From the NCBI GenBank assembly GCA_964304625.1, contig OZ199838.1:7861466-7925465 (forward strand): 64,000 nucleotides of DNA. Direction: 5' to 3'. The DNA is from Kudoa neothunni (lineage: Eukaryota > Animalia > Cnidaria). How positions within the stretch are numbered: the stretch's first letter is position 1; the number at the start of each line of letters is the position of its first letter. A program made the position numbers and the translations under genes. Shown here in pieces: positions 24,312 through 57,339 of the stretch. The notes under the pieces are model-generated. The model did not search any database. It saw only the letters and a list, made by a program, of their open reading frames with translations, and was not told the DNA's origin.

Positions 24312-27300
24312 ATGAGCTTGGAACGTCATATACTGGAAATTGATCCAGATAATATAAGCCGCTATTCAAGACCTAGTTACGATGTTGCCAAAACGATCAG
24401 AGTCATTGACAATAAAGCCAAAAATCCTGTACACGCTGGAGCTACAACAAGTTTTTTTTATTTGCGTATAAATGGATAAGATTTCTTAGCCTGTGTGGAT
24501 GATGAGCATATCGACAAAGTTAAAGATAGGATAAAGAGACTGAAGAGGCTTTATTTCGTCCCAAATAATTTTTTTAAAAAGGATAAAAGTTTGTTCTTGT
24601 TCTGCAAAAATAATTTGTTGAGAAAATACGTTACAGTTTTATTAAACTCAAATGTAATATAATTATATTGCGTTTGTATCTTATATTAAAAAAATTTAGG
24701 GATTTAAAACCAATATTTTTCTAACGATCATAGCCAATCTAATAACGGCTGTCATAAAAACACAATCAAACTATAACGACACTACAAAATATATTACAAT
24801 TGTGGTAACGAGAAAATTATTGTAAAATTTATAATTATATGAATTTAGGATGGCTTAAGTGATTATTTTACTTACATATATCTGTTTGAAGTTTTTTTAA
24901 AAATGATTTCCTTGGGTGCTATTTGGGGTAAAAATACATATCTTAGAGACCCTTTGAATATTCTGGATTTTTTGGCAACTATAATTGGGTGCTTAGTTTG
25001 TATTTTATAACGATTATAATTTTTTTAGTGTTTTAAAACTGAAATACATTAACTTGTTGAAAAACAATACTATTTTTGAATCTGCAGTTGTTCTAAGGGT
25101 ACTACGCCCTATTAGTTTTCTTAATTCGTTCCAAAGTATCAAAGTTTTATTTAATTGGAGTGTATGATATTTTAGACGTCAGTATACTTGTAGAAACATT
25201 CAGTTTGATATGGAAAAACGTCTTAACCATATTGTTCATTTATTTAATGGTCTTGATAACTTTAGCATTAGTTGGAAGAAGCATTTATGACTTAAACCGA
25301 CACATGTTTACATCTACAAATGCTTCAGTACATATTAACAATGATAAATGTAACGAAAAGAGTATCCCTAACTCTATCTTGGCCAAAGATTGTATACAAA
25401 CATTAAACAACTCGAGATTTGGATACGACATGAAATTCGGAAATTTTTACGACTCATTGATGACCGTACTAATTATCTCTTCTTCCCATCACTGGAAAGA
25501 AAATTATAATAAGGTAATTTTTTATCGCGAATTAATAATTTTATTTTGGTAAAATCATCTTGTGCATTTCAGAAACAAAAAATATATATTACGCAGAATT
25601 TTTTTTATCCTTTTATAAAGTCTTGCTTTTAATTAATTCATAAATGGTGATAGTTATTGTATGATAAATATAGCTAACCAATGATACTTACGTTCAAATA
25701 ATTTTTTTGACATTACAATAGATTTAAAAAAATTTGTATGAGATAAATATACATTACTATAATCATGAGTCAATAAGAAGTAATATAAATGGGAATCTAT
25801 AATAGATTCATAATAGCAATGTTTCAGCGCTGTATCGCTAATTAAAATTTAAATGCGCTACAGAAATATGAGCATAAAACTTTATCTTACAACCATTTTA
25901 ATCATTAGGAGATATTTCTTGAATTCTAATGTGCATTAAACATATATAAATAATACTTATTTCAATTTGAAATATTAAATTAGATCATTTACAGCTATTA
26001 CTAACCTCTTTAATTAAAATCATCTTTTATAAATTACTGATCAAAAATATTTTATTATCTTTGAAAAAAAAATCCGTTATACGTATCATAAAACTATTAA
26101 TGTGAATAATAAATAATGGATACATTTACTTTTGAAGTTATTGTGCTCTAATAAATTATTTAAATGCCAAAACATAAATTTAATGTAAATTAAGAGCTCT
26201 CTTTAATTTTTTACAATAGGAATATTAAATATAAAGCAATAACTTATATTAATAGTTATTACGTTCCTAAATATTTATTTATGGGAGAGGGATAACTTTA
26301 AAAAATGCTTCAATAATTTTTAAATGCTAGTGCGAAATATAAGGAAAGAAACACACGCTTCCATAGTTGAAATATGCGCTGGCTATTGTTTTCGTTAAAT
26401 CCATATAGCTTTGTTAATTTCTTCAAGGTATTTCATTCATTGTATTAACACATTCCTAAAATCCCTAGATAAAAAAACTTATCCAGTCACTAGCGCTAAT
26501 GCCCAGCTTTGCCTGGCACTATATGATGGAAAATTTTAACTTTAAATTTTATTTTTGAATGGAGAAATTTTACGGAAGGTTTAATCTAGTTAGCACGTTA
26601 AACCCTGCAAATTTTATTTTTCTATTTAAATGGTTTCATTTTAAAACTTGTCATTATTTTTGCAATGTGATGATTTAGAAAAAAAAAATTTTGCGCGCAC
26701 TTTCCATTCAAATATAAACAGAGGTATGGGGAGAAATTAATGAGTAATTTTAAGTTTATTTTACAAATTATTGATAAAAAATATAATCACCTCAATTTAT
26801 GAGCGATTTAATTAACGGTTAAAGTTCATTTATTTATTAAACAAAATCATTAAGTAATTTAAGTAGGACTTTCGAATCTTTCCAAAATCTTACGATACAA
26901 ATTAATCCTTCTAGTTATAAAATTTATTATTAGTCTACAAACGATAAAAAAATAAAATCGACCTAGGGTGCGTCAGAAATAAAAATATTAATTATTACTC
27001 CTTTTTTTTGCAATTTTATAATGGATGTTAATTAGGTTTTAATAATCTGTGAGTGTTAACTTACGTATTCACTATTTTAGCATATTTTCCCGATTTTTAA
27101 ATAAATGAAACCTTTTTTTTTAACAAAAATACTTGCTGGTTTAAAAATATACAAATTTAATTATCAAAATACGATTAAATCTAAAATGTAAAGGCGTTTT
27201 TGATGTGGAAAATTACAGTAATGCTTAAATATCAACTGGGTTTCTCAAAGGAGTGCATCCTTTTAAAAATAAACGTACTGTTTGATTGTCCTAAAAAATT

Positions 27301-30300
27301 CCTTTGTATTTAACTTTTCTTAGATTAACGAAAACTTTGTGAATATATCGGTTAGAACAAATAAACCAATAATTTCCTGTTAACTTACATGGCACATATT
27401 GAGAGGGGACTGTATTTTGTGCAAAAGTAATCGTGAATATAAATTCTTAAACCACGTATAAAATGAGGTGTCGTATACTTTCATGCAGCTTTTATATCAT
27501 AATGAATTAGTGCGAGCCTAAAGAAAACAGTATATTGATTTGAATATTAACCTTAAGGTCTGGGGGTAAGGAATAATTAGGTTACTACGAACTTAAACAT
27601 TTAAAAAATTGTCTCATCGAACTTAGAAACTTATCGAATTAGTGATGCCAACCATTTTTCAAGAAAGTTTAGGAAAACAAAATAATGAGTAAAAACTTAT
27701 CGAAATGAATATAATTTCAATCTCAATCGATATATTTGATAAAATGAAATTTTCACATCTCAGAAATTCCAATGGAGCATAATTTTCATTTAAGAAGTTA
27801 TCACAAAAATTTAATTATTTGAAAACACTACACATACCTACATCGCTTTTAGAATGTGTATAGACTCAAATTATTTCAACGTGACAACAACTTGTAATCT
27901 CAAATTATATGTTTTATTTAAAATGATTCTAACATTTTTCGCTTAGCTATATCCATAATACTTGAAAAATGAAAATACATATTAAATAATTTGGTTACGC
28001 TTCGAATTTTAAGGGAAATTCTCCATCTCTTGTAAATATGGCTTTAATGGCAATATCTGTCTTAAAATTACTCCAAACAGGCATATGTAACATTTTTGAA
28101 ACATTGTATACCAAAATTAACGGATTTACCTGGTATATCGCGAGTAAAAATTCATTTAATTGATTATCACTTTGAAGTAAACAACATCAATATTATTCAG
28201 GTATATTTAATCTGTTTATTGATATAGGAAACCAGAAGATTTCTTACTTCTGATAACGATATTGATTATGTTTATACTTCTAAGTAAATGGAAGATTTAC
28301 ACCCTCCGAGTAAAATTGGAGTATTTTTACATCCCATATTCTTTTTAAACCAAACGATTAAATATTCAAAAATAATTATTTTTGAAAATTTTGAAGAATT
28401 TTAATCGATTAAATTTGAAATTATAGACCAATATTTCTAGCTAAACATTAACCGCGCACGCGCACAAATCAAAAATGACGCATATCGTAGAAGTAGAATG
28501 TTTATTGACAATACGTTTAAGATTCTATTTTACGAAAGCTTTTAAGCAGCATTAGAATTATTTTGTTAAATATACGAAAAAGAATAACAATAATAATAAG
28601 ACAAAATTGACATAATTATCGGTTAAAACAAATGACTGGAATGGAATTTGCAGTAAGATGAAGCACAAATGTCGCATTTTATTTTGGGCTTTCTATCATA
28701 TTTCTTATCGAAAAATCGACATCTCCCCTAACTATTTTGTCCAATTATAACTGAGGAGTCTTCACTAGCTGTCATATTTTGTTTCCGTCTCGAAAGTAGT
28801 CGATGTGTCAATTGGGTTGCCATCATTTTCAAAAATTCCCTCCGGAGTAATTTTGAAGGAGGGAATAAATTTTTGTATACACAAAAAGCATTAATCAGAC
28901 TGATATCAACCATGTTAAAGAAAACAATTAACGGCCAACAACAAGATATTAGTCTCACATTTGTTTCTGTCAATAATCTGGAAATCGTATCGACTCCGCC
29001 TTTTACTGCATTATAACATCAGGTTTAAATGGCTTTTCCGTTGATATTTGGGTGTTTGTCGAGGAGGAACAAAGCATAGAAGCAGGTTAATTTCTTCGAG
29101 GCTGATATGTTAGTATCATTTCTTTGTTATTAAAAACAAAAAGAGATGAATGAAGAGGAGTCGTTCTATCTGGTCTCAAATATGGCGGTATCTCCCTCTT
29201 ATTTGAACGCATCGTTCCAACAATCGTAAGTTTTTTTTGTAACAATTCATCCGCTAACTCAATAGACGTGAAATAATTGTCACATACGACATTTCGACCA
29301 GAACGTTCAAATGGTTCCACTAACTTTAAAACAATATTCCTCCCAACATTTACAGCCCCCGTATCATTTTGAGATCGCTTTCCCAAATAGAGCATTGCAT
29401 TGCAAACAAAAGTTGACTTGGGTCAGTTATTAAAAAAAACTTTAAGCCATATTTTGAAGTCTTTTTGGCATATATTGTTTGAATTTACAACGACCTCTAA
29501 AAGCCACAAGTTGCTCTCATCGATGCAAAGATCCTCAAAAGGTCGAAAACTCTGGATAAGCGAGCCAACCCAGATATCCCAGAGTTCACGAATGTGGCAA
29601 AATTTATCTGACATTTTTCTTATCTCTCGTGTTTTCAAATCGTCGAAATGAAGAGCTATCTTGATTTGTCGGAATCGATTTAAAGAAAATAGGTCACGAT
29701 AAACTTGTCTTCCCTCTTCTAACCCAAACAATTCTTTGACTGGTTGTAAATTATCGTCAAATATTCCCATTAACAATAAACATCCGATGAATCCATCGAA
29801 TTCGACACTATCTAATTGCTTCCAAGCATCACCGAACAATTTTTACCGTATTGATTTGTATGTTTCAAAATTAAATCATACATTTCCTGGCGAAAAAACA
29901 CTTTAAACGTATCAATAATTTCATTTACATTCTGCAAAACGAAGGATGAAAGAACAGTACGACTGGTCAAAATGTTTTTGGCTGCAGTTCTAGAAGTCGA
30001 GGGTTTTTTAATTGTCTTTAAAGTTCCAGTCTTCTCTATTAAAGAGTCAGATGGAGCATTGATTTCAACTTCCGAATTATCTGATGACGTATCACATATA
30101 AAGGAATAACCCAGGTCAGAAGAATCAGCATCAGAGCAGCTGCCGCTATACTCACTCGAGCTCATTTTACTAACGTCAAATGGCGCACGCGCACAGCATA
30201 TGACCAGTACTATTTGTTGATTAAAACAATAATTCGTCGATGAAATTGTATCAAATTTACCAAAAAAATATTTTTTATTTTGAACAATTTAGTTTAAAAA

Positions 30301-33300
30301 ATGTGGGATGTAAAAATACCCCAATTTTACTCGGAGGGTATTTTCGCGTTATATTTTATTTTATTTTACAAAACAAAAAATTTTATCAGGTAGAATATGT
30401 ATTATATAACGTTAAAAGATTAGACGGAATATACAAAATTTTAGTCTTAGATTTGAGGTAAAAAATTAAAGATTAAATAGGCCTGGGGTATAAAAATACC
30501 CCATTTTACTTGGAAGGTTAATAAAAAACAAATTAAATCCAGCTAGTTAACCAATAAAGTAAGGATGATTGAAAAGTATATGATTATACTTACGTAAACT
30601 GGTGGTAAGTTCAAATCATAACGTCATAGTTATATTTTATGACGATATTACACAATGTTCATTTTTCGTACTACAGTGGGCGTCGGATAAAACATGCTCT
30701 CCTTTGGACCATAAAAAAGTGTGTGTTTAAAACAGGGATTAATTCAATTATGCATAATTTTAACCGTGGATAACAACTAACATTACCAAGTAATGTCAAC
30801 TTTTTTAAGATTATTATTTAGTTTATTAAATAGTTTGTAAATATGTCAATAGCCATCCATGGCTTCTTATTTGAAAAATGGGTGGCCAGTGTTTGCTTTA
30901 AGTTTTTAAAACATCTTGGATGACCCTAATGACGAATTACAATGGGTTAAAGTTTTTCATCTTAAAATGATAAACTTAATAAAGTGAATTCTGTTTTGAG
31001 CATTTAGCAATTTTTTCGTTGGAAAGGATGTAATTTCGTCTTAAAAAAATCAAGAATATATCCTGCTGCTGGATTTAGATTTCATTAATCATACTTATTT
31101 GTTGCTGGTAAAATAAAGCTGTGTTATCTAGATCATAAACTTTCTCAGCTTTATAATTATTTAAATGTTCAATCATGAACAGGTTCTGTTTCAACCATGG
31201 TTGGTTGTGCCATGAAAGTTTAATCGAAGTAAATTAAACCTCTCTTTGAAACCCTAGAGCCAATCCTAACTAAATTCTGTATCTTTACTAATTTTGTATT
31301 GTGTCTCATATTGCTGTGTAATAATTTCCACTGAAGTTGAATCAAAATTTTTTGCCTTCATCTATGAAATCGATTCATATACTTGCTGAGTTACTTATTT
31401 TGTGGGCCTTTCTTTAATGCTAATCGACTTACTTTACTAACAAACTTCCAACAGCCTGCATTATTTTAGCTTTCTTTGGTAAAATACGGTTTAAAGTAAA
31501 TATAAATTTAAGAGCCAAATATTTGACAATGTGTCTTTTTGCTTTTCGATATAAGCTGTCTCCGAAATACTTCAATATATTATATTTTATGTTCATTATG
31601 TATCGTTTGTGAGATTTTTTCCAGGCATGTTGTTAAGCAGGCTGGAAACGGCGTGAATCTTAAGGCGGCCGCATAGAAAAAAATGCGGATTACAAACAAT
31701 GGGCCATACTTGCATTTTTACGTAATTCAACAAAATAAATATTTTAAAAGATAATTGAAGTTTTATTGATTAGTTTAGCGTAAATATATCATCAACATAA
31801 ATTTACGCTAAATTCATGTAATTTATGCGATAAGATAAAAAATGCGGATGAAACACATTGCCATTAACCATTGTATCAGCAAGCCAACTATAAGTCGATC
31901 GTTAGGATAGTTTATGTCTTTTTTATTCCAAAACGGAAAACCAAGCCAATAATTAGTATAATCAGTCAGAAGAAGTTGTTCAACTTTTATTTTTGGATGT
32001 AATTTGCAATTAAAATGCATTCCTCATAGTGTATTCTGTCTATCATACTCAACCTTATTTTTAAAAATAATTTTTTTTTACTTTTTTTAAAATTTTTACA
32101 TCATGTTATTTTTAGTTGCGTTTCAATTTCAATGGGTTTGAAAATATTACATGTGCAGTGTATCTTATCGCTGTAACCCTATCGTCGTACTTAACAATAT
32201 ATTTGATACTTGGTCTCTTGTCAAAGTAATTCGAAATATCAAAAATATAAACAATTAATGATATATTACTAGATATATGTGGGACATTCAGTACTATTAT
32301 GACAAACGAACAAATATAATCTGTCGAAATAATAAAAGTTACGTGCATGAAAAATTGGAAGGTTATACCGATTGGTTATTTTATGGTAAGAATGTTCGAA
32401 TACGCATGGAAACATCGAACCATACGACTGACAATTATGCAACAAATGAATTTCGATCTATGAACGTTTTTGCCTCAAGAATAAATCCAAAGTAGGAATA
32501 AATCAAAATATATTTGTCTTATTTATGATTAAACTAAGATTTTCTGATTTTTTGTCTATTAATTTCTCCATTGTCAAGTCGAAATTGAAAAAGATAAATA
32601 GATCAAAAGAATTGTACTGGGCAGAATTGATAGTTATATTGATAAACACTGCTTCACATCTAAGTTTTTTCCACACAAATAATTTTGAATTTCAATGGAT
32701 AACAACAATTCAAAGTATATCAATATTGGTTACGCTTCTGAAGTTATTTAGGAATTATTGACGTTTCTTCTGGAATGCTCTACGTTGCTTTTTTTACCAT
32801 CAAAGTAATCTGTGTTGACAAATCTAAGGATTTACTTTTCACAGAACCTATAGTGGATGCAATGGTAAGTGAGCATGTGGACTCGAAGCTAAATATTCCA
32901 ATCATTAAAACCCCAACTAGCACATAAGAGAGATTAAAATCTGAATTTGTAACGTTTTAATGTATTTTAGTATGACAAAACTTAGTTTGATTAATTAATA
33001 ATAGAAACTACTCTCTATCACACTTTAATGTGAATATCTCATCGAAATTATTTTATAGTTATAATGAGGGTTTTTATAAAAAGGAAATATTATTATATTA
33101 TATAATAAATAAATATTGTTACTTTAATATGGTTTAAATTATCTTTTAACTATATTATTTGATTGATAAAAAAATTTTTCTTCAATCTTAACGCAAATAT
33201 TTCAATAGTTAATGTTGGCATAGGGATGAATAATATTTATTTTTAATGTATAATGCTGACAAATATATACTATTATAACGGGAAATTCTTGTAGTATTAT

Positions 33301-36300
33301 TTGGCGAAAAATGAAAATTTTTGAATGCTAATTCCTGTTCCAGTAAACATAGTAATGGCTTTTCCTTTTCAATCATTTCACGATATTTTTCTTCCTTACA
33401 TGGGTTTTCATAAATTTTTGTGCAATATAACTATTCATTTAGAAAAGTTTTTCATCGGTATTTTTGAAATCGAGTCAATATATGAATTATCTTACTATTA
33501 AGATGTTAAAGATTTATTTGCCGGGAAAATTTAAATATTGATTTCACCATCGTGGTTTCTACGATACAAAAATTATTTTCATAAATTACCGTATATGGTA
33601 TCCTTATAATCGTAAAATGGGTTTCCAAAATTTTACTGAATTCAATCAGAAATATACAAACTGTGAAATAGTTTTCAACTAATTTAATATTTTCCACAAG
33701 AAATACTATACAGGAGGTAGTCGATTTTCCGTACTTTTATTTTTTCTTCTCTTATATATAATTATCAGACTTAAAACAATTTCTGAAAATCAATAAAGTT
33801 TGTTTTATTCAATTAAAATTAAAAGTTCCAAGGAAAAATTATTTTATAAAAATAGGGATTATCGATTTTACGTAACTTTTCAAAATCCTTTGTTTTAATG
33901 AATTAAATCCATGATAATATTATAAATAATTTAGACATAACGAAAAGTTTATTATTTCCCCATTTTTTAAGGATTTGCGAATAAAACCCGGTAAATCTTT
34001 TACATTCTTGTGTGGTTTTAAACTCGTATCTATTTCTGTTTTGAAGACTACTGAATGAATAATGTCGAATTCATTTCTTCATGTAAAATAAGCTTGGATT
34101 AATTCAAACAAAAATTCCCGGAAGAGGGATCATATAATAATTTTTTCTGTAGTTAGTAATTGATTGAAGGCATTAGAGCCAAGAAAACCGATTTATTACA
34201 GACGATTAAATATGAAAAAAATAGTAAAGGAATTCGATTAAAATAATTTATTACTTATAGGAGCTTTTATGATTACAGATCGTGCCTTAATTTAAAAAGG
34301 ATAAATTTTCTTGGATAGCCATTTATGCACTCAACATTGTTACGATAAGTAGTAGAATAAATTGAGTGCTATTGCTGAAAAATCTTCTACCGACCTTTTT
34401 TGTACAATTTATATAAGACTATATTAATTAAATCAACAAAACAATGTCAAATAATTTTTATGTGCATAAATTTGTTGAGGAAAACTTTTATTTACGTCTG
34501 GAATCCAATTCATATCTAGAAATGGTATCTAAAATGATTTAGAGTTAATTTTATCCGTCTACTTCTGGTAGTTGTTCAGATCGTTCTTTGATTTGTCGTC
34601 ACAAAAATTAACGCGTTTTTAAAGGCGGTAAAAATTTACCCATTTAATTTGAGTAAATTAAAAAAGCAAGAATGAGGATGAAACATTAAAAATATATCTA
34701 ATTTGTTAAAATAGTAATTTCAAAAATATTGTTAACAATTTATGTCTCTGTAGGTCAACTTTTAACCATGGGACCAAATTTTATAACGTCAATCCTGTAT
34801 TTTTCAAAAAATCCAGAAAGTTAACTATTATCTATCAATAAACGAATAATTTTTGTTAAGGATCCAACTACAAAAGTATTATTTCGGTTAAAAACTACAT
34901 TATTTAATAGGATGGAGATCTAAATGCATATAGCCATAAAATTTTCTTTAATTTATTTCAAAAATATTAAAATCTTTCTGAAAGTTAATAATTTTGAACT
35001 TAATTATATTACATCAATACAAAATACTTTCATTGTATGTGCACGTATCAAAAAGTAGGGAAAATCGGTCAATGATGCATTTTCAGTAACTTCTCTCTGG
35101 TCCCGAGAGGATTACGGAAAATCGATTCCCTACTGTACATGCACAAGGAAAATAATATTTTTGTTTTATATAAATCAAAATATAATATATAATATATAAA
35201 TATTTGATGAAAATCAAAATTACTATTAATATTTTTGACTTATCACAGTTTAAATAAAAACTAATTATCATTTTATTTTCTGATTTTATCTATCGTTAGA
35301 TAAAATTTGGCATGACAGATTTTTAATGTTGCATTTCTGATCTCCTAAAAGCCTACATAATATATTTACTTCATATGATATTGTTGAGAAGAAAAAAATG
35401 TCGATCAATTAAAACATACAAGCCGAAATTCATTTTGTTTATACATTCCATACTGCACGCATAGGCAATGGTTTAGATACATTACCTGATTTTCATCTCT
35501 AATAATTTTCAATATTAATATTTGGTGATTCCTATACCTAGAATAGGATTTGATTGGACACATTCTCATAAAATATGTTCTAGTCTCAATTTTTTGGGGA
35601 ATAAATACTTAATACATAATTCAAACTTTTAGACATTTCCGTTTTTATCAGAATCACTTTTCATAACATCGTTATTTGGGGTTTTATACTTGCTATATTG
35701 TTTATTAATATAATGTTTCAACAATTAGATAACGTTTTCTGGAATGATCGAAATAATTTTATTCTTTTCTTTGAAAACTTACGTCATTAAATTCACAATT
35801 TTTAAGTCATACAAAATATTAAAGTTGTTATATGTTTACAAGTAAGATAATTATATTTTTCACTCTATGTTTTATTAAGGCTGAGAGAAGAAACTGAGAA
35901 GTTAATTCCTCCTTTTGTCAAGTTGATGAAATTTCTGGCTGTAATTATGGTGATAACGAGTTTTCTGTTGTTCTCCATGGCGTTGATCTTTGTTACGGCA
36001 TTATCTGGAAGGTAATATACTATCATTCCTTATTTTATACGACAAAATTTAGAAACGAATTAAATATGAATCAAGCATCCAATTATAAATCGTTTTACGA
36101 TGGTTTTATTTCGACATTTCAAGTAATCAATTAAATATGGTGATTCAATACCCCTTGATCTACGTTGATTAGAATTTACTGTTATCCTGCTAAACGATAT
36201 ACTTTAAAAACATTTTAAACACTTTTGCATTCATGAATAATCTGCTTTAGAATTTTGTAGGTATTAACGAGATTGAATATCTTAAAGATCCTCAATATTT

Positions 36301-45300: not shown

Positions 45301-48300
45301 TTTTTCGCAATTTTATAATGATGCCAATGATTTTTTAAAAGCTGTGAGCGGTAACTTACGTATTCACTATTGTAACAAAATTTCCCGATTTATAAATAAG
45401 TCCAACCTTGCTTTTTATCAAAATTCTTACTGGTTCAAAAATATACACATTTAATTAACAAAATACGATTAAATCAAAAATGTAAAGGTGTTTTTGGTTT
45501 GAAAAATTACAGTGATGCTTAAACATCAACTGGTTTTCTTGGAGGAATGCACCCCCTTTTAAAATTAACGTACTGTTTGATTTCCCTAAAAAATTACTTC
45601 GTATTGAACTATTCTTAGATTAACGAAAACTTTGTGAAAATATCGGTTAGATCGAATAGACAATAATTTATTATTAACTTACATGACACGTATTGAGAGG
45701 GGATTGTATTTTATGCAAAAGTAATCATGAATATAAATTCTTAAACTACGCATAGAATGTGGTGTCGCTTATTTTTATGCAGCTTTTATATCATAATGAA
45801 TTAATGCGAGCCTAAACAAAACAGTATATTGATTTGAATATTAACCTTAAGGTCTGGGTTAAGGAATAATTAGGTTACTATGAACTTAAACATTATTTAA
45901 AAAATTGTCTCATCGAATTTAGAAACTTATCGAATTAGTGATGCTAACCATTTTTCAAAAAAGTTTAGGAAAACAAAATAATGAGCAAAAACTTATCGAA
46001 AAGACGAGTATAATTTCAATCTCAATCGATATCCTTTATATATATAAAAGAGGACTGTCGGTATGTTTGTGTGTGTGCCCCTAAGTACGCATGTGCGGAC
46101 AATTTTTTCCGTATAGAGAGCCATATATAAAATTTTTATAAATTTGTAATATTTAAAAAAATCGTTTAATTGTTTTCGGACTACGAAAGTTTCCACAAAG
46201 TATTTATGAAATAGTGATTTTGTCGATTTAAAGTTTGTTTTTCGGATTAAATGAGTTCAACTATAGGATTAGCACTTGCTTATTTCATGGTTATGGTCGG
46301 TTGAAGTTAACTACCTCCTTTATATGCTCCATCATATGTTCATTAACTGCTTCTATCTATCTATCTATCTATATTTATATATAAGGTTGGCGTTTCTATT
46401 TGGGTGTCTGTTTAAACACACTCCTTATTTGCGGAGTTTTAAAGTATATGACTTGATAAGTATATTTTATAAGTTCTATTAATGGTTTTCAACGTGGTAA
46501 AAAATCTATCTATGTTTCATAAATAACGACTTCGTGGAGAGCGTTAAAGTTACATTGATTGAAGCGTTATAATGGAAATACTGCGTTCATAGGTTTCATT
46601 AAATTGTCCGCTAAGTTTTACTTTACGTGATTAAGTTCAATACAGATGTTTGTACTTTTATTTCACCAAATTATTTAAATTGTTTATGATGAAATCGACG
46701 CAATTTGTGGCTGTTTATGATAAAAGCGCATGTATGTTTATGCCGAGCTAAACGATGCTAATTTTAGCAATATCGATTAATTTTCATAAGTTTTCTTCTA
46801 TCTCTTTTATCTCTTAAAAAGTTAGTGGTGCACCCAGTTACCGAGCCAGGCCAGAATTCGACTTTTAAAAATCCTCCGGGCAAAAAAATAACGTTTTAGA
46901 TAACACTTTAAAGGGATTTAAATAATTCGATAATGTAAAAAAATACGACACTGACAATAGATTATTTGACGTTGGTGCCGGGCCACGAAATTTTTAAATG
47001 GACGCAGGGATTGATACTTTCCTACACAGAAATGATCACAATTTAAATTTCGCTAATCCAAATCGCTGATATGTCACTTAAAAATTTTTAGTTATTTTTC
47101 ATCTAGGGATTAATTGAAACTTCAATATATTTGTTGAATATTATTAAGAAACGTATCTATGCGAAATCTTCCCCAAACAACGCCGGGCAGTTCCCGCTAG
47201 TTAAAAATATCAAATGTATAATCGCGCATACGTACGCCATAGATATTGCGTAAATTTTTCCTAATACCAAAAAGTTACCACGCATTATCGAGACCCGAGA
47301 CCTTATTGTAATTTATAATTAACTTTAACTTGGAATTTTATTTTAAATGTAACATCCCTTACTAAAATCGGATCATTTAAATTTTGGGGGTTATAATCAT
47401 CAACATTAACCTTTTATAATGTCAAATAGATATTCACAGGATCCAATATTGAGGAAATTGCAAATAAATACACTACTTCAAATGTGTCATCAAGGGTGTA
47501 CATAATGATTTTCTTATTTCTTATTGTTTTATTATCATGTAAAAGTGTGGAATGCTAGATATTAGCTAATTCGTTATAGATGTTTGGTCCTTTGTTTTGC
47601 TCGCTGTTTTTTACAACTTACTCAAAGAATACCTCAAGGACGACCAAATAAACATTTTTGAAATTGATAATATTGTTGATACTCCATCAAATGAACCGTC
47701 CCTTAATAAACACTTAAAAATTCCTCAAAGTATTCGTATAAATTAAACAATAATTGTTCTATTTAATTCAAGAAATAATAAATTGGATATCAGAAACTTA
47801 CACTCGCTGGAACACAAATAATCTAATGCAACTAGAAACATTTTATATTGGACACAGATCATTATTCCTGTTTGGCCAAAAGAATAGGTAAATTAATTTG
47901 ATCGAATTTAATGTAAATTTTTGATAGAATAAAAAAGTTTCTAATAAAAATTTTATTACGCACTCCATATGAAGAATTTATGCAAGCAATTATATTTCTG
48001 AAAACTGTTTTTATTATGATAAAAACCGATATGACCACTTCACCCAGTAATGCATCGTATATTAACGTAACTACAATTTATAATTATTAAGTTAATTCTG
48101 TTTTCAAGGTATTCTTTTTCGCCGAATATCTATTTTTATTCTTTTTTCTCCTGGAAGCTTTAATTAAGGTATTCATTATTCACCAAAATAATTCATAAAT
48201 ATCAAGAATGATATGTAAACGCTTAATCTATCCTGTCCTTCAAAGTCATATTAATCCAAGTGTCAACATATTTAGATTTATTCGACTAATCTTTGGTTCT

Positions 48301-51300
48301 GCTATTTGTTAATATTTTGTTAAGAGAAATACAGTCGTGTCTCGGTATTGCGTGGTTCAATACAGCGTGTTTTCCCATTTCCCATTAATATTTATTTCTG
48401 AAAATCCAAGAAACTCGGTAAAACTACATCTTCAGTTGTAATAAGTCTCGTATAAGCCATTAATTTCATTTTAAAGTTAAGATCATCAAAAATAGATGGT
48501 TTCTTTATTGCGTGGCTTCCTCCAGGAAATAATCCGCATAATCCGCCTATTGATTATTGATGCGCCAGAAAATTCAAAATGGATAGGTGTCAACCATATA
48601 TAAATGAAAAAAATAATAATTATTCAATGTTACAAGCCTCTTTATTTAATTAATACAACGAGCAAAATCTATGACCATTAAGAGTTTAATTTGCCAAGTA
48701 GTTAATATTGTCCGATTTATATTGAGTCCAATTAGTTTATCCATCTCTCGATGGGATATTTTCAAAGGAGGCGGTACAATTAATTCTAATATTTTCTCTG
48801 ATTGTATAAGAATTAAAGTATGGAAAATATAGCTGGTTAGAAATCTGCTTTTACAACTGGATTGTGCCCCAGCTAGAGAAGAAAAATATTTCTGGGGTTC
48901 TAATCAACAAATAAGCTGAGAACAGTAGCTACAAGTCTAAAAATTTATGACGTATAGTTCAGTAAAGGTTTTTTTCAAATTTCAAGATTAATTACTGTTT
49001 GGAAAACATTATATTGCATGGTGAGGTTGGAAATACCGATACAAATAGCGTATATGAATGGATCTAAAAGGTTTCTGAAGATTTTCAGAGGCAAAAACTT
49101 GTAGAAATTATTAATTTAGACAAGACTGCTCTCATCTACGAACAGTTGTTACAATGAACATTTACCACTAAAAAATGAAATCGGTTTGAAAGCGATGAAG
49201 TTCTCGAAAACGAGAGTCACCTTGGTAATTGCTTATTTCAAAAGGCGACAAATTCCTTCTATAGGCCATAGGAACATTGAAAAAGCCACCTTATTTTTGC
49301 GGTATCAATAACCTCCCAGTGAAATATCTATTCCAAAAAACGGCTAGACATCAGCAGCTTTATTCTTTTAAATTGTTAAAAACATTGATAAGCAGTTTAA
49401 CGAATAAAAAAAGTTTTTCTTATTCTTGATCCTTGATCAATGTAAATCTCACCCTCAATTAATAAATCAATGTAATTACATCGAAATGAGCTTTCTTCCA
49501 AAGTATACTAATGTAATCAAATCAATAGATTTTGTGATCATCCATTATTTGAAGTTTAACTGTAGAAAATCATTCGTTAGTCAGTTTATTTGTCAATGAT
49601 TCTACGAAAATTTTCAAATATACTATCTTGGAGTGTCTTCGTATTTTGTAGGCTGCGTGGAAAATGGTGACGAGCTCAACCTCAACTTTTGAAATTTTCT
49701 CGAGCAATGTCCGATATTCAGAAATCGTGCGATTAATTTAAGGAAACATTTTTAAACATCAATTATGACAAATTTAACGTAAATATTAGTCATACCGAAA
49801 AAGAAACAATTGATGGTATGTAATACAATTGGTACACATTAATCTATTGCTACATAACGCGAATGAGGTTGTTGAATTGAAGCACGTTAAAGTTATACTC
49901 AAAGAAATGCATAGTAAACCTGATACAAATGTCCCAGGATCAACAAAATGCAACGATGATCTCGATTTCTATTAAGAAAATCAAATAATTACGATATCTG
50001 ACCTAAAAATAGTCATAAATATTATTGGATAATCATTTATATTTAAAAGTCCACCTTCATCATTTCACAACCATCCAATATGGATGCCCTATATAAAATT
50101 ATACGGCCTGGAACAAAGTTAACGAAAAATCGACTATTTCTCCAATATACAAATATAGTAATGCGCACGCTCGACCCCTAGATATTGCGTGGTAAATTGC
50201 TATTCCCAAAAAAACCTCGTATATCTAGACCAGCGCTTCCCGATTCGTTTAAGACTTCGGACCCCCACAGTTAATAAATCTAGCTCCGGACCCCCCCCCC
50301 CCCATTAAATTAGAAATTTGAAAACAGATCTACCTTTAGTAGAAAATGAAGTTAGTTAAATTTGAACATAAGTTTTCCAAAAATTATACAAAAACAAAAA
50401 AATATAATAACTATAGTTCAAAAAATCAATTAATTCGGCGTTTGACTCTTTTCTTGTCTTTTTTTTTTGAAACAATAACATCAAAGCGAGGCTCTTTGTT
50501 GGATAATGATAAACACATATCATTTTCGAGAGTGAGTGAATTTCGATATTTATTTTTTATATACAGAAGTGTGGAAAATCCAGCTTCACAAAGCCAAGTT
50601 GTTGAGAATTGAACCAATATTTGAAGAGCTATTTTGGAAAGGGTAGGATATTGAATTAAAGTTCCGCACCAAAAATGTTCGAGCGAACCAGAATCAAATA
50701 ACAATTTCATGGAATGGCATTCTCGCAAATCGATCAGATTTTCTTTTTCTTCGTCATTATCACTCATTTTGTCTAATTTGAATGCAAACGGGTTAATGAT
50801 CCAACTCTCTGACTCCTGTATTTCTCCAGGGTGAAGTAATCATCAAATGAATTTCTCAATCGATCCGAATTCTCGCATATATATTTTTTGAAATCCTCAA
50901 AAACAGTGCTCGTATCATTCAAAACGATTTCTTCTAGAGAAGGAAAATTCGCCAAGTTTTGACAATCGATTCTGGATCTCCATAACATCAATTTTTCCCT
51001 AAAAGAGCACAGTCTATCACGGACGACTATAACATTTATCCCTCTTTCTTGAATAGAGCAATTTAGATCATTGATATGACTAAAAATATTTGCCAAGTAG
51101 GCTAGAATGAATAGATGAGAAATTGGGAATTTCAAAAGTACGCGCAAGATCAGATTTTTGTTCGAATAGAAAGTTCTGAATTTTGTTTCGAAGTTCGAAA
51201 AATCTAGCTAAAGCTTTGCCTCGTGAAAGCCACCTGACTTCGGTATAGTACAGAAGTGCAGATGCTTCTTCACCCGAGTCACTGCAAAATGCCTTGAAGA

Positions 51301-54300
51301 GTCTGTGGTTTAGAGCTCTGCCTTTGATAAAATTTACAATTTTTATGCAAGAGTTCATAACGTTTCTCAAAGTTTCTGGCATCGTTTTTGATGTGAGAGC
51401 TTGTCGATGAAGGATACAATGGGTAATAGTAACGTCGGGAATTCGGTTTCGCATTAGAGTAGCAAAACTGGATCGTTTTCCAAGCATGACCGGAGCACCG
51501 TCTGTACAAATAGATCCAATAAGCTGGAAAGGTATGTTGTTTCTATCAAAAAAGTTATGGACCATGTCGTAAATATCCTTCGCAGTGGTAGTTTTTGTTA
51601 AAGGTTACAAAAGAGAAACTCTTCCACGATAACTTTTGATGTAACATAGCGGACGAAAGAAATTAGTTGGCTACAATTGCCACGTCGGTTGACTTGTCCA
51701 GCTGGATGGAGATTTTTATAGGTGAAGCTTTCACATCTTAAAGAACTTGATCGAGTACGTCCGCACTCATATCATCAATTCTATTTCGAATAATATTGTT
51801 TGAGAGTGGAATCATTTGAAGCTTTTTAGCGGCATTTGGGCCCAAAATAATTTGTGCCGATTCCAAAATACAGGGTTTAGTAAGAGTTTCAGCAATGGTG
51901 TGTGGCTTTTTCTTCGCAATTTTATATGACGCCAAAAGAAATGGTTTACAAAGGGGAGCAAAACCTAACGTTGGAGGAGTCATTCTTGAATCGAATTTTA
52001 TCCTTTTAGTGGTCAAAGATTGATTATCATTCCCTGCTCTTGATGTTCCACCATGCTTAATTGTAAAATGTTCATGTAGTTTTGATGGTTTCAAACTTGA
52101 ATTGGAAAATAATATATCGCATAGAATACATTGGGTTCTGTCAATTCCATCAATTACTCTTTTGGTAAAACCATACTGGGTGTATTCTTCATTCCATTTC
52201 CTAATTTTCTTATGATTTACCATGTTGAAACGAAGGCTAGGATTAAATCAAACGAAAAAGAGGGTGAAATTAGGTTCGCGTGACTTATCTAAGATTTCTC
52301 GAAATATTTTATAGTTACAAACTATTTAAAACTAATAATTTAATTATCATATCCAACAAGAGATTTAAGTATTTCTATTATTAGCATCTGTCTACATCAA
52401 ATTAAATTATAATTAATTGTCATATTTTTATAGAATATATGTATATATAATATTGAACTAAAGTTAAATCTAAAAAGTAAGATAATTTCGCGAGAATATA
52501 AGATCACTAAAAACATAGTTATGATTAAAGGTTGATCCGAATGTCGCCGATTCGGATTCACATACATTACAAAAGATGTTCGTAGCGAAACTATTACACT
52601 CGGCATCATTTTTTTAAATAAAATAACAATAAATATAATTTTCCATCAATAAATTATTAGGAACTGCGTTTATAATATACCATACTGTTACAATATTCAA
52701 AACCCTGTTACAATGCTAGGATATACATTTTTTTTCTTTGACTCAGTTATGGACCCCGGACCCCCAATCGGGAAGCGCTGATCTAGACCTTGCCGTAGTA
52801 TATAATATCGATTCCATGCGTGCGCACGCATGGAATCGATTGAACCATTTATTGGCTCCTTTTTAAACATAAATTCATTTATATAATGAAAGTAAGGTTT
52901 TTCTACTTTTCATTTTATCTTTAGAGAAAGTGCCTATCATTTTAACCTGCGGCTCATTCTTTTATATAACTGATTTTCGATCCATAACAGGATTAAAATC
53001 ATATAGACCTTCCGGATCTTGGTTTTAATAGACTTTTCTAAGAGTTCTTAAGGTATCCTTAATTTTAGATGTTGACAGTTTGACGATTAATTGTTCCTTT
53101 TGACACTTATCATCAGAGATACTGGCGCATGACCCGCTATTAAATTAGACTACCAACAAGGTCTCCCCTTCATTCACGTTTTTGTTTGTTAGAAATGTTG
53201 TAGCTGGAAAGTTTTTGTTCTTTCTAAAAGATTCTACTGAGGATTGAATGTCCTTTATATTTAAAATGTACTTTTTACCAAGACAATTATTCTATTACTA
53301 AGATCAAATTTCTAAGCGGTTCATTTTTAAACTCCCAATAGACTTAATTGAATTATTACAACTGATAATTTTAAATCTCTCATCAAAATCCCTTTGTATC
53401 CTTGGCATGGTCAAATTTACTACACAATGTGGTATCAAACGGGGTTCCCGGACCTTAGGATTGTTACGCAATACAAAATTACTTCGAAATACTGAGCAAT
53501 TTCATATTGATTTGTTTATTCATAGATATTTTTAAACATATTTTACGAGATAATAATGTAATTATTACTTGGCAGTATCCAAATTTACAAACAATTAAAG
53601 AATTAACGAGATATTAGGCTACTACGCAATATCGAGGCACGACTGTATTCTCCTAAATTATTTAAATCATATTTTTACGTTTAATGTTAATAGATTCCAA
53701 TGGGTCGATTTATCACTGATTTTATTCTAAAAAGAAATAAATCGTCGAGTTTGAATGTTTTAAATATTAACATGTTAATTGATATTCTATTATAAATTTT
53801 TTATATATTTGATTAAAATAAAGAATACTTGTCCAGTTGAGTAGCCAGATGAATATTACATAATATGCAACATACGATCACTCAATTTCAATATATGATT
53901 CCAATTTAAAACAATAAATTTGCATTATTTAACAAATATTTCCATCTTGATCCTTGATGTTGGCACATTTTAATATTTTCATGTATAATTTACTTTTTGA
54001 TGAATTATTTGAATTTATATTTTTTAGTTAATATTTATATAATCGTAAACCATGAATAATTTCTAAATATTCGTAGATAATATCGTTTGGTTTGGTTTTA
54101 TCCCCACGGTCTTACCTCAGAAATGTGATGAACGCACTAGAATTAACCCTAGTGATGTTAGAAGCTGCTTTTACAATTACATTAAGGTATATTCCTACTA
54201 ATTTTTGCCTAAATCTTTTTAAGTATTCTCAAATACAACGTGCTTTCAAACGCACTTTATTATTTGGAAATTTTCCATGCCATCAGATATTTGAAATTCT

Positions 54301-56907
54301 TGAATGGACCACATGCCACCGTATTTAAATTTATAAAGCAAAATCAATATTTTCTATTTAAACAGAGGTTTATTTCAAAAAAAGTATTATATAAGGCAAC
54401 ATCTATTGGTATCTTTGTAATTTGGATATTTATAACGTTTTCTGTGATTGGCGTAAAATTGTTACACGTAAACATGATTAAATATCGTGTGAATTTCATC
54501 ATAGTTTTCATTAAGGGATCCTTGATATTCTGTTCTGATAGGACAAAATCACCACAAGATTGCAGGTAATAATTATTTCCTTTATATAAATTGTTGTTTG
54601 AGGTTACTAAATTAAAGGGGGGATTTTTTAACCGTAGAAAACTTTTCAATTTACTTTGATATAACGGTAATAAAGTGGCTTTTAATCAAATATCTATGGG
54701 AACGTAAATTTAGCAACAAAAAAGAATATTAATCTCACCAGAATACAACTATGAAAACGTTTATCAAGGAGTGATGTCTCTTGTGATTTTAACAACTAAA
54801 CAATTATGGCCAGAGTAAGATTAGAAAAACATTATTAAAATAATCTAGCTTAGGCAGCTGCGATCATTAATATCAAATGACACGAATGAAATGATTGTGA
54901 CACGTCTAATGAGTTTATATTTTATTGCAGCTGCTTTAACATTTCGATACGTCGTATACGGCGTTATTTCGGCTCTTTTCATAATTGAATACCAAAGGGA
55001 TTACATGAAAAATCAGTTTGTATTTATTTTATCGTTTGAAATCTATTACTTCACGAATTTAGGCATATTTATTAAAACTTTCGATGACGTCAAAGCCTAT
55101 GAAAAAGCAAGTTACTAGATTCCAAAAGAAACATGAAAGTTTTATTTCCAATGTTGTCAGGAATAGATATTATACATATTTTGCAAATCTCGTTGTTATT
55201 ATCCATGTCATCGTTGTAGCGATACAGGTATCACATTGTATTCTGTAAATCTATATATATATATATAAATAATTTTGAAATTTTATAGCCAGATTTGTTG
55301 ATATATATAATTGTTCATGTCACGCTTGTGCTGTTTTACATTACGGAAAATATCCTAAAGATTATCGCATTCAAAAAGGTTTTGTTGATACTAAATATAA
55401 TTATATTATTTTTAGATATTTTTTATGAACTTCCGGAATGTTTACCATTGCTCTGTTACTATTATTAACTTTGTGGAATTAGTGTTTTTGATCTTATCAA
55501 TTATGGTATATGATTAGGTTTACATTCAATTTATTGGAGATTAGGCGTATAAATCAACCGAAGAACTCATCATAATATCCAAATTGTTAACAATTACTAG
55601 AATAATATTCTTAACAACCCATATTCCAAAATCACTTTTGATAACATTTAAACTCCTTATTAAAAATCTTGTTCCCTTGTTACTAGCATTTATTGGATTT
55701 TTGATGTGTGCCTCAATCGTTGCTCAAAAGGTAAATCCAATCGAAAAAATTTTCGGCATATATATTTAGATATTTTATTACGTTGAAGTTGAGGATGGTT
55801 CCAATTTCGGTCTGAATTTTAATACAACATCGAATTCATTTGTCACGCTCTTCAGGTATGGATATCATATCGTTACTTTTTTGATTAGTAACTTGTACGT
55901 AACAATATTTATAAAAATTTCAAAACACGCTTTATAAATCAGTTATATTAAGAATTTCATCGGAAATTGCTGTTTCATGATAGTTAACATGTTTTAGAAT
56001 AGATATTAATTTTTTTATTTCTAAATTAGGATGGCATTTTTTGAAAATTGGTATGGCGTAATGCAAATCGAAACTTCAACAAACAAATGCGGCAATAAGA
56101 ATTATGAGGGCTGTGGTTCTAAGTTCTCCTATATTTTCTTCCCTTTCTTTGTTTTAATATCGATATTTATTGTAAGTAAAAATATATGTATGTACAAAAT
56201 ATAACTCTCTTTATAAGATTAAAAATATATATTTATCAATGTTAATTGATACTTGCGAGTTTTGTCTTATCAGCAAAGATCGACACAACGTTGGGCCATC
56301 TCATCTCCATGAATTCATTGAAACATGGTCTTATTTCGATCCGAATGCAACGTAATTTTTAAATTGCATTAAATGAAAAATGATGATGTAATAGAGGGAA
56401 GGTCAAATATTCTTGTCTTTATCAGATTGTAGGCATGCTTTCTTATCCATTAGGGTCTGAATGTGTGTTATGTGATCATCTAACAAATATGGTAATGACG
56501 TGTTTTAAGGTTTCACTAATTTAAATAGATAACGTTATCCACTAAAACACCAATAGAGAAAGATGGCTACATCGTTTTTCACAAGACATTATTTTCTCTA
56601 ATTTGGAGAAGCCTATTCATCAATGAATTTGTACAAAAACACGAAAAATGTGAATTTTTAAAATGAAATTAGGGAATCACGAGTATGCGTCACAACATAA
56701 ACGATAATTTATCAGTTATCGAGAAGCTAAAAATCATACTTCCAAACATGACCCAAAATTTCATAAAAAATTTTGTTATTGAAGGTCTTTTAAAATTCTA
56801 CTAACTATGTTTTTAATCTTAATTTAGATACTGATACCCTCCATACGGGGAAAATTTCATATATCAAGTTACTTTATAAACGATTCAAGAGTACAGCAGG
56901 ATATTAA
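24312..56907 (+). CDS. Highly divergent HVA (Cav1/Cav2-type) voltage-gated calcium channel alpha-1-like protein, 36 exons, ~1485 aa
   Basis: Manual GT-AG splicing, all phases compatible, no internal stop. Exons: 24312-24450, 24490-24653, 24700-24804, 24849-24988, 25029-25135, 25176-25513, 32116-32225, 32273-32491, 32539-32714, 32752-32864, 35729-35841, 35880-36011, 36053-36122, 47430-47538, 47580-47729, 47773-47887, 47928-48066, 48109-48168, 54077-54186, 54224-54320, 54366-54467, 54516-54565, 54618-54666, 54714-54814, 54854-55019, 55063-55227, 55289-55378, 55416-55505, 55545-55730, 55770-55855, 56030-56171, 56218-56351, 56395-56491, 56529-56630, 56673-56784, 56828-56907. Four 6-TM repeats in order. 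Motifs: YLRDPLNILDF, LRVLRP, AID LEGYTDWL, GPSHLHEFIETWSYFDP (cf. GPHHLDEF..W..YDP), PLG, DG.I.F..TLFSL. The first exon and start codon are the least certain part. Confidence 0.92.
26490..27730 (-). mobile_element. Non-autonomous Helitron, family A copy 1
   Basis: Minus strand begins A|TC and ends CCAGGCAAAGCTGG (hairpin)...GCTAG|T. Paralogous over its full ~1.24 kb length to 44793-46029. Confidence 0.8.
28302..30517 (-). mobile_element. piggyBac element with fragmented transposase
   Basis: ORF pieces 29812-30165, 29423-29839 (LCIDES), 29087-29395 (VCDNYFTS) and 28728-28973. CCCTCCGAGTAAAATTGG at 28302 has inverted copies ending at ~30338 and 30517, and the latter is followed by TTAA. Confidence 0.88.
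30674..31640 (-). mobile_element. pogo/Tigger relic
   Basis: TA|CAGTGGGCGTCGGATAA terminus. Minus-strand DWL*GFKERFNLLRLNFHG (~31210-31267) resembles the element at 1-1558. The right boundary is approximate. Confidence 0.6.
33711..35135. mobile_element. TA-flanked TIR element (Tc1/pogo-type, decayed)
   Basis: TA|CAGGAGGTAGTCGATTTTCCGTA and the inverted TACGGAAAATCGATTCCCTACTG|TA. Inner repeats lie near 33855 and 35055. Confidence 0.7.
36385..38230 (-). mobile_element. pogo/Tigger relic
   Basis: ORF 36835-37116 reads LIFLPRITTSISQPTDLG...EYTILDCLCILK. FSKKRVTLV lies near 37345-37372. Related to 48332-52795. Boundaries are approximate. Confidence 0.7.
39464..42792 (-). mobile_element. Mutator-like element (MULE), near-intact, 3329 bp
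   Basis: ~100-bp TIRs (GCTATTACCACGGGAATCAATCTCTCTGC...) and a 9-bp TSD TAAAGTTAT at 39455-39463 and 42793-42801. Confidence 0.93.
40090..42493 (-). pseudogene. MULE transposase (WRKY/FAR1-like N-terminus, DDE, SWIM), five exons, one nonsense codon
   Basis: Motifs CPF...HNH, LDATYK, ITDK, CIFH, TNNRLE, SWIM CNC...LPCSH and GRPKG. Single in-frame TAA at 41960-41962. Introns 41721-41768, 40527-40566, 40411-40463 and 40185-40221 restore the frame. Confidence 0.88.
43085..43729. mobile_element. Old non-autonomous hAT element
   Basis: Ends TAGGGATTCTAAAC / GTTGAGAATACCTG. Flanks TTCTATTA and CTCTAGTA match at 6/8 positions with a central TA. Confidence 0.5.
44793..46029 (-). mobile_element. Non-autonomous Helitron, family A copy 2
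   Basis: Collinear paralogue of 26490-27730 with the same boundaries. The terminal CTAG has one substitution. Confidence 0.8.
46032..47200 (+). mobile_element. Non-autonomous Helitron, family B copy 1
   Basis: 5' end A|TCCTTTATATATATAAAAG and 3' end CCC..CAACGCCGGG...GCTAG|T. No TSD. Confidence 0.85.
48332..52795 (+). mobile_element. pogo/Tigger relic with a hAT inserted in its 3' TIR
   Basis: TA|CAGTCGTGTCTCGGTATTGCGTGG. Remnants NLDKTALIY (~49113), KFSKTRVTLV (~49198) and LDQCKSHP (~49432). The 3' TIR is split by the hAT at 50231-52780. Confidence 0.75.
50231..52780 (-). mobile_element. hAT transposon, Buster/Charlie (SCAND3/ZBED8-like transposase), frameshifted
   Basis: Perfect 15-bp TIR CAGCGCTTCCCGATT and 8-bp TSD ATCTAGAC. 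ORF pieces carry BED-like CILC..KPSKL.EH...KH, ICTDGAPVM, HCILH, EVRWLSRG and STTWLCEAGFS. Confidence 0.96.
52807..53645 (-). mobile_element. Internally deleted pogo derivative lacking its left TIR
   Basis: Right end CGCAATATCGAGGCACGACTG|TA. 52834-53266 is nearly identical to 44267-44699. The element begins at a 34-bp palindrome. Confidence 0.7.
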
Positions 56908-57339
56908 ATTGGTTGGAAACTCAATATTTAACCCCTTCAGTCCGGAAAAATCCAGACGAACTAAAAAATGTTAGACTATTCACATTAATTTTATGTTACG
57001 AAATAAATTATGATCGTTTTTGAAATTATTACAGATAAAAAAATAAAAGGGCCGTGAACATTTCACAGACAATTATATCTCTAAAACTGACTGATAGAAT
57101 TTAATGAAATTTTATATATTGACATAGTCCATAAAGAACAATTGATTTCTAAATTTATAAGCATATACACACTGGCTATATAGATGACCTTAAAATAAAG
57201 CGCGCGACTGAACATAAACATGTTTTTAACTTTAGAACCGGGTTGATTACCAAATTATTTATTCATAAAGGTATTCAAATGTTTTATAACTCTATAACGA
57301 CAATTTTTCTTGATTGTGCGCGTGTCTCACATCAATTTG

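Follow-up and report, generated by a model that had tools for sequence, protein, structure and literature searches.

A Cav-like alpha-1 gene of Kudoa neothunni with a predicted H/S/Q/E selectivity ring and depleted voltage sensors

Gene model and pore loops

The window analysed here is a stretch of 64,000 nucleotides (nt) from the genome of the cnidarian fish-muscle parasite Kudoa neothunni (GenBank assembly GCA_964304625.1, contig OZ199838.1, positions 7,861,466 to 7,925,465, forward strand), and coordinates given without a prefix refer to it. On its + strand, at 24312..56907, lies a gene related to the voltage-gated calcium channel (Cav) alpha-1 subunits, here called gene A. The gene was modelled as 36 exons forming a 4,353-nt coding sequence for 1,450 amino acids, with the start at ATG 24312, the stop at TAA 56905-56907 and no internal stops. 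A first-pass annotation of the same DNA had described an intact channel of 36 exons spliced in frame; the rebuilt model has the same exon count, start and end. The part of "intact" that stands is the frame, open across 1,450 codons; the gene stays a model, and three of its introns are weak.

Exons were located with a spliced aligner that fits a profile to genomic DNA, using a profile of seven Cav2 proteins, GT-AG introns in three phases and penalties for frameshifts and stop read-through. The resulting alignment scored 425 bits with 32 exons over 24504-56654 and needed no frameshift or read-through at a 12-bit penalty; as a control, the same aligner run on the opposite strand (reverse complement) of the gene A stretch gave 129 bits. 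Beyond the aligner's 32 exons, those at the N and C termini and the exon for S2 of the second domain were placed by hand. Cheap frameshifts (3-6 bits) led the aligner to nonsense, and without splice-site scoring it placed spurious micro-exons in transposons.

The exons lie on the + strand at 24312-24450, 24490-24653, 24700-24804, 24849-24999, 25088-25159 and 25194-25513 (exons 1-6); 32116-32225, 32273-32491 and 32539-32728 (exons 7-9); 35633-35680, 35729-35841, 35880-36011 and 36053-36122 (exons 10-13); 47430-47538, 47580-47735, 47794-47887, 47928-48046 and 48092-48168 (exons 14-18); 54077-54186, 54224-54320, 54366-54467, 54516-54565, 54618-54666, 54714-54814 and 54854-55019 (exons 19-25); 55063-55237, 55293-55378, 55416-55505, 55545-55730, 55770-55855 and 56030-56171 (exons 26-31); and 56218-56351, 56395-56491, 56529-56630, 56673-56784 and 56828-56907 (exons 32-36). 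The surrounding sequence is AT-rich (26-36% GC) with tiny introns: 31 of the 35 introns of gene A measure 34-174 nt and mainly have the form GTAA/GTAT...TAG, with GTAA donors in 18 of the 35, and the four long ones (6.6, 2.9, 11.3 and 5.9 kb) are packed with transposon remains. Several junctions have alternative splices that stay in frame.

The spliced alignment spans domains I to IV (DI-DIV), giving four homologous six-transmembrane (6-TM) domains in one polypeptide. DI from S1 to the pore loop was assigned to exons 3-6 (24700..25513, +) by Pfam Ion_trans and profile alignment, and DI S6 to exon 7 (32116..32225, +; end ...YLILGLLS) by profile alignment. DII from S1 to the pore helix falls in exons 9-13 (32539..36122, +), where the S2-S3 loop and the start of S3 are absent from the in-frame model. 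Profile alignment placed DII S6, the II-III linker and DIII S1-S2 in exons 15-18 (47580..48168, +), DIII S3 to S6 in exons 19-25 (54077..55019, +) and DIV S1 to S6 in exons 26-31 (55063..56171, +). Pfam Ion_trans matched exon 4 (E 7.6e-9) and exon 6 (E 2e-4), both in DI; judged from matches limited to these two exons, gene A is very diverged. Just after the DI pore exon, an S6-like open stretch, NIYYAEFFLSFYK (25573-25619), was rejected as a coding exon, having no in-frame join and being redundant with the S6 of DI (IS6) already placed at 32116; the resemblance may be due to chance or may go back to a former exon arrangement.

The selectivity ring was read from the four columns at which a profile of Cav2 and choanoflagellate Cav proteins carries E/E/E/E, and these columns read H/S/Q/E in gene A. 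In the DI filter SSS-H-HW (25478..25495, +) one His stands at the Glu column and another at the Gly column, and the Trp is kept. The DII filter FTG-S-NI (47433..47450, +) has Ser at the Glu column, Asn at the position of the +1 'beacon' Asp and Ile at that of the Trp, with a pair of Glu 3-4 residues past the filter Ser. In the DIII filter TTK-Q-LW (54792..54809, +) Gln occupies the Glu column directly after a Lys, and the Trp-Pro is kept; the DIV filter AFF-E-NW (56034..56051, +) holds the sole Glu kept in the ring. Three of the four pore tryptophans are thus retained, the DII residue being lost. The ring of Cav1 and Cav2 is stated to be always EEEE or EDEE (PMC10120453); gene A has neither form, nor does it have the DII +1 Asp of high-voltage-activated (HVA) alpha-1 subunits.

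Single exons were also aligned by hhalign to an alignment independent of the aligner's profile. The DI exon placed HHW on EGW (E 0.006), the match being to the profile's DIII loop, which holds the equivalent position; the DIII exon placed KQLW on EGW (E 0.001), and the DIV exon placed ENW on EAW (E 1.9e-6). The 36-residue DII exon taken alone was not placed by hhalign and had no BLASTP match, and the DII call rests on the junction 36122|47430 across an 11,307-nt intron (GTAATC..AAATAG). Before this junction the DII pore helix SNYKSFYDGFISTFQ aligned to nFdtF..alltvFQ and ended ...STFQ at the GTAATC donor; across it, FQ|IFTGSNI matches FQ-ILTGEDW residue by residue, followed by IIS6. A scan of the + strand from 24 to 57.3 kb of the window returned no alternative loop exon of the TGE.W or GE.W type, the kind of Glu-bearing exon that the first-pass annotation had named as a possible source of a different ring. 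The four pore-loop peptides given there, with their coordinates, were recovered exactly; its H-S-Q-E reading agrees with the profile columns and, for DI, DIII and DIV, with hhalign, and the three Glu, the DII +1 Asp and the DII Trp that it listed as lost appear in the profile alignment as H/S/Q, Asn and Ile.

Voltage sensors, cytoplasmic modules and family placement

All four S4 segments were located on the + strand, with few charges. The DI remnant VLRVLRPISF (25090..25119) has two Arg only; the DII segment (35789..35841), patterned K..K..K..(Y)..K, is the best-kept sensor, its charges being all Lys; the DIII remnant FHAIRYLKFLNG (54273..54308), placed by hand and by the aligner, has H, R and K in register; and the DIV remnant SKLLTITRIIFLTTH (55578..55622) has one Lys and one Arg. 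Basic residues per S4 number 2 in DI, 3-4 in DII, 2-3 in DIII and 2 in DIV, and a set of 4-6 regularly spaced Arg/Lys in each S4 was not found. A frame-1 reading of the DIII S4 (KYSQIQRAFKR) was dropped, as it had no join to S5. Adjacent to this segment, in DIII S4-S5, lies an optional GT..AG stretch of 45 nt (54321-54365) that is free of stops and in frame whether kept or removed; its excision gives canonical S3-to-S5 spacing, which makes it a candidate retained intron, and such retention is reported as frequent in myxozoans (PMC12239612).

The three weak introns lie in the N-terminal region and in the DI and DII sensors. Intron 1 (24451..24489, +; GTTTTT..TCTTAG, 39 nt, or 30 nt if taken to 24480) is in frame and holds TAA at 24477. 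The second (25000..25087, +; GTATTT..CTGCAG, 88 nt) is the sole in-frame link between DI S3 and S4 and removes the S3-S4 loop and the outer turns of S4; retaining it breaks the frame, and a frameshifted reading of it brought no gain in aligner score. The third (35681..35728, +; GTTTTA..AATTAG, 48 nt) is in frame and holds TAA at 35711 and TAG at 35726, so that its retention introduces two stops; read straight through by hand, it gives near-canonical DII S2-S3 spacing. In-frame introns of 3n length that hold stops and have good GTAA donors occur elsewhere in gene A (54815-54853 and 55731-55769), and the weak introns are therefore not diagnostic of decay.

Sequences resembling the cytoplasmic modules of HVA channels lie on the + strand after DI and after DIV. 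The core of an alpha-interaction domain (AID), HEKLEGYTDWL (32346..32378), aligned by hhalign to ERELNGYLEWI (E 0.04); its E..L.GY..WL pattern fits the profile columns, with the W-L 35 residues past the end of IS6, so that the AID of an HVA alpha-1 subunit is present. Vertebrate Cav1 has the same 35-residue spacing. Past IVS6 lies a GPHH/EF-hand-like region, VGPSHLHEFIETWSYFDPNA (56290..56349; hhalign E 4.4e-7, probability 93%), and the protein ends in an IQ-like segment, TGKISYIKLLYKRFK (56845..56889), whose score on the Cav2 IQ columns was 10.9 bits and whose presence hinges on the last splice. An alternative last splice (donor 56775) would give GKFHISSYFIN with a stop at 56972-56974 and 2.8 bits against the same columns. 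Six-frame scans with Pfam GPHH and Ca_chan_IQ did not match gene A.

A HMMER search with the DI S2-S3 exon, the best-conserved one, returned many four-domain channels from protists and other animals at a best identity of 43-58%. Seven of the matches were named bilaterian Cav2-type proteins (from Trichinella, Drosophila, Bos, Saccoglossus, Branchiostoma, Diretmus and Crassostrea), and two further relatives were choanoflagellate Cav. The nearest unnamed Cav relative was rejected as a myxozoan sequence, being an intronless gene on a metagenome contig, and a search of PDB sequences for the DI S5-pore exon brought up chance matches only. In a tree of 984 aligned columns gene A fell inside the HVA clade beside bilaterian Cav2, its branch being very long; fitting of the alignment to the HVA profile favours HVA placement, and the reference set was one without Cav1, free-living cnidarian or identified NALCN sequences. 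By the profile alignment, this placement, the AID and the GPHH-like region, gene A is classed as a putative Cav1/2-type (HVA) alpha-1 by descent, nearest to Cav2, which upholds the identity first proposed for it.

With bilaterian Cav2 (N/P/Q-type, cacophony/UNC-2) and choanoflagellate HVA Cav gene A shares the four 6-TM domains, the pore helices and the AID distance, along with a GPHH/EF-hand-like region and a putative IQ-like end. It differs from Cav2 in an identity of 25-29% over aligned columns, in the H/S/Q/E ring with loss of the DII +1 Asp and Trp, in S4 charges of 2-4 per domain, and in its shortened DI S3-S4 and DII S2-S3 regions. Among channels with an altered pore, skeletal-muscle Cav1.1 offers a parallel, pore changes having abolished its conduction in teleosts and in a mouse model, whose N617D mutation reportedly stems from fish channels. 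Both the teleost alpha-1S and the N617D mouse have a non-conducting Cav1.1, that is, an alpha-1 subunit selected for a non-influx role (PMC8184209); Cav1.1 keeps the EEEE ring and the sensors, has one pore residue changed and drives RyR1 through its sensor, whereas gene A has deteriorated in the ring as well as in the sensors, and coupling of the muscle type is not known from Kudoa. NALCN is likewise a four-domain protein, its S4 segments poor in charge and its gating weakly dependent on voltage, and serves as a model for a sensor-poor pore, but it has three acidic ring residues (EEKE/EKEE/EEEE; PMC10120453) and no AID; gene A has a different ring, does have an AID, and groups with HVA Cav in a tree with no identified NALCN reference, whereas NALCN forms a clade of its own. 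The anthozoan Cav3a (PMC10120453), thought to be Na+-permeable, has the same Asn for the DII +1 'beacon' Asp; it is a T-type channel that keeps its EEDD ring, whereas in gene A three ring residues are neutral too.

Transposons, selection on the frame and other channel genes

Transposons flank gene A as well as invade it. On the - strand, intron 6 (25514-32115) holds a piggyBac-type transposase in at least three open reading frame (ORF) pieces (29087..30165; DDE_Tnp_1_7, E 5e-18 and 2e-17), intron 13 (36123-47429) a MULE/FAR1-type transposase in pieces (40100..42493), and intron 18 (48169-54076) a hAT-type transposase remnant of about four ORF pieces (50426..52223). These three fit the earlier remark that neighbouring transposon ORFs are broken. 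A repeat copy at 26485..27733 in intron 6 is 86.8% identical to 44788-46032 in intron 13, the pair 36893-37968/48598-49680 is 71% identical, and a 433-bp pair in two introns of gene A (44267-44699/52834-53266) is 98.2% identical, which suggests that transposons were active here recently or that gene conversion took place within the locus. Just past the stop codon, open stretches on the + strand at 57153-58300 are MULE/FAR1-transposase-like (...EIIFVDATYKLL...).

No stop interrupts the 1,450 codons of the gene A frame, against 142 and 97 stops in the two remaining frames and 0.073 stops per codon in the introns. In simulations at the local base composition, 1% neutral substitution produced a mean of 2.8 new stops with a probability of none, P(0), of 0.056, and 2% produced a mean of 5.6 with P(0) = 0.0015; the intronic repeat copies have diverged by 13% and 29%. 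Every long insertion falls in an intron, although exons account for about 73% and introns for about 27% of the pre-insertion gene, and the chance that four first insertions would all be intronic is put at about 0.005. An open frame set against the simulated stops and the decayed intronic repeats and transposases argues that gene A drifted far while selection kept its frame open, as had been claimed from the same contrast in the first-pass annotation. The H/S/Q/E ring was, on these counts, in place in a selected protein. The GC content of the exons (31.1%) also exceeds that of the short introns (21.0%), an offset like that of paralogue B, described below (34.8% vs 26.2%), and like the genome-wide one (36.8% vs 26.0%; PMC12239612 Table 2).

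The genome was searched for other channel genes in six frames with Pfam Ion_trans, a Cav2 protein and the Cav alignment, a procedure insensitive for small, diverged exons. Paralogue B (C1:10366459-10373538, +) is an HVA-type alpha-1 of about 31 exons with an open frame (359 bits) and 21% identity to gene A. In its ring, A stands at the first column, G (followed by Glu at +1) at the second and E at the fourth, no residue being aligned at the third. It resembles gene A in its non-EEEE ring, in keeping the DIV Glu alone ('ENW' in both) and in its depleted S4 segments; unlike gene A it is without an AID, has a clearer IQ-like motif, and is compact (7 kb) and transposon-free. The first-pass annotation had proposed a check for a canonical EEEE paralogue: within the sensitivity of this search no EEEE HVA gene was seen in the genome, and the paralogue that was found is itself non-EEEE. 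A NALCN-like locus lies separate from gene A at C1:8.727-8.734 Mb. A third four-domain gene (C1:15583975-15588676, +) is very diverged, scoring 210 bits against the Cav profile, with the loops ILTMESW in DIII and MANQDW in DIV; about 9 kb downstream of it is a long run of a degenerate tandem repeat coding FIFIIYF-like peptides.

Auxiliary subunits were sought in the same way. No PF12052 match to a Cav-beta gene was found in the genome by the six-frame search, which is insensitive here. The only two guanylate-kinase matches were rejected as Cav-beta, one being a true guanylate kinase (C1:11.906 Mb) and the other a MAGUK gene with PDZ, SH3 and guanylate-kinase domains (C1:1996180-1999374, - strand). 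A VWA_N match of the alpha2delta type (C1:5896618-5896755, +; 31 bits, E 7.6e-6) ends ...YEPRFRPW, and a motif of this type precedes the VWA domain in alpha2delta/CACHD1; PF08473 had no match anywhere in the genome. A gene like an alpha2delta-type auxiliary subunit seems to be retained.

Interpretation

Myxozoans belong to the cnidarians but are free of neurons, and their polar capsules discharge as independent effectors (PMC12464826). The K. neothunni genome comprises 40.2 Mb in three chromosomes and a circular mitochondrial genome, with a GC content of 30.4%, 45.6% repeats, a median intron of 49 bp and a median exon of 112 bp, and was assembled at ~7x HiFi coverage to a quality value (QV) of 48.5 (PMC12239612). 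We give a probability of about 0.6 to the reading that gene A is a selection-maintained HVA descendant, probably no longer Ca2+-selective or steeply voltage-gated, that acts as a leak-type pore or is non-conducting. In work by Yang et al. 1993 and Ellinor et al. 1995, single mutations of the EEEE glutamates in Cav1.2 reportedly lowered Ca2+ affinity and selectivity, each of the glutamates contributing to high-affinity binding. In Cav3, permeation moves towards Na+ once the DII +1 Asp is neutralised (PMC10120453). A loss of Ca2+ selectivity is thus expected for gene A, whose ring keeps a single acidic residue, has a Lys next to its DIII position and is without the +1 Asp: such a ring would be expected to bind no Ca2+ with high affinity, and 2-4 charges per S4 in shortened sensors would make steep voltage gating unlikely. 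The product would then most likely be either a weakly voltage-dependent, poorly selective leak cation pathway resembling NALCN, without being NALCN, or a non-conducting scaffold. The scaffold would work through the kept AID, the GPHH/IQ-like regions and surfaces for extracellular partners, in loose analogy to non-conducting Cav1.1 (PMC8184209), whose sensors are intact.

Several observations weigh against this reading. Three introns with poor donors excise stops or parts of the sensors (the outer S4 of DI and the S2-S3 loop of DII), and could reflect early decay. Pfam significance was reached in DI alone, DII-DIV being recognised by profile-guided alignment only, and the third codon positions of gene A (GC3) are not distinct in GC from the first and second (GC1, GC2). 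No Kudoa orthologue was found by HMMER with the DI S2-S3 exon or in a homologue search with the DI S5-pore exon. No Cav-beta that would account for the kept AID was detected in the insensitive six-frame search. Three RNA runs and one contig set gave zero reads on 53700-57400, a void test: the runs carry the host species label, and RNA reads from tuna map to the Kudoa parasite in very small number (PMC12239612).

The alternative that survives best, to which we assign a minority share of the probability, is a very young pseudogene, selected until recently with H/S/Q/E in place and now silent and decaying. On this reading, TAA 24477, TAA 35711, TAG 35726 and the broken frame between DI S3 and S4 would be real lesions masked by tiny introns. 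The donors GTTTTT, GTTTTA and GTATTT, set against GTAA in 18 of 35 introns, speak for such a death, as do the stops and sensor parts that these introns remove and the near-canonical DII spacing on read-through. The AT-rich, transposon-swamped setting, an exonic GC of 31.1% that lies below the genomic exonic value of 36.8% (PMC12239612) and the zero count from the host-labelled RNA runs, void as a test, point the same way. About three lesions, however, correspond to about 1% neutral divergence and would allow at most a very recent death; moreover, 3n introns with stops are ordinary in gene A, the frameshifted DI reading gained nothing and the insertions spared the exons.

Improbable, in our judgement, is a newly tuned selectivity or ligand, in which the DI His pair with Ser, Gln and Glu would form a proton- or transition-metal-sensitive, or proton-permeable, filter. 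The maintained frame, the retention of pore helices, three pore Trp and the S6 segments, the two adjacent His at the narrowest part and the DII Glu pair 3-4 residues past the filter would suit such a pore; against it, the His come from one domain of four, the DIII position has a Lys next to it, and the residues of paralogue B are others (A/G/-/E), which leaves no new motif in common. The neuron-free, hyper-divergent myxozoan that carries gene A, the S4 depletion and the non-EEEE paralogue B favour a loss of selectivity and gating over tuned selectivity. A mis-modelled gene, in which at least one pore loop of the true transcript would come from other exons or frames and the ring would differ, is very improbable: the DII call does hang on one junction over an 11.3-kb intron and a short exon missed by hhalign and BLASTP, with an aligner noise floor of ~130 bits, but the DI, DIII and DIV loops lie within well-supported exons, the DII helix ends FQ at GTAATC with the next exon running I-F-T-G into S6, and no rival loop exon was seen.

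Beyond gene A itself, we offer tentatively, and with less than even confidence, the view that myxozoans keep two ancient HVA alpha-1 descendants under purifying selection, both lacking an EEEE ring and full sensors. No natural 'pseudo-channels' of the Cav1/2 lineage, non-Ca-selective or non-conducting, would have preceded them; together with alpha2delta and calmodulin they might take part in the discharge of polar capsules or in signalling by the sporoplasm. If gene A is instead a dying gene, it marks an ordinary step of parasite genome reduction. If selection did keep gene A open while three Glu, the DII Asp and most gating charges were replaced, it would constitute a natural experiment on a Cav scaffold without Ca2+ selectivity or voltage sensing and would show the fate of excitability genes after the loss of a nervous system. 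For annotation, a match to 'voltage-gated calcium channel' in Kudoa does not imply calcium entry.

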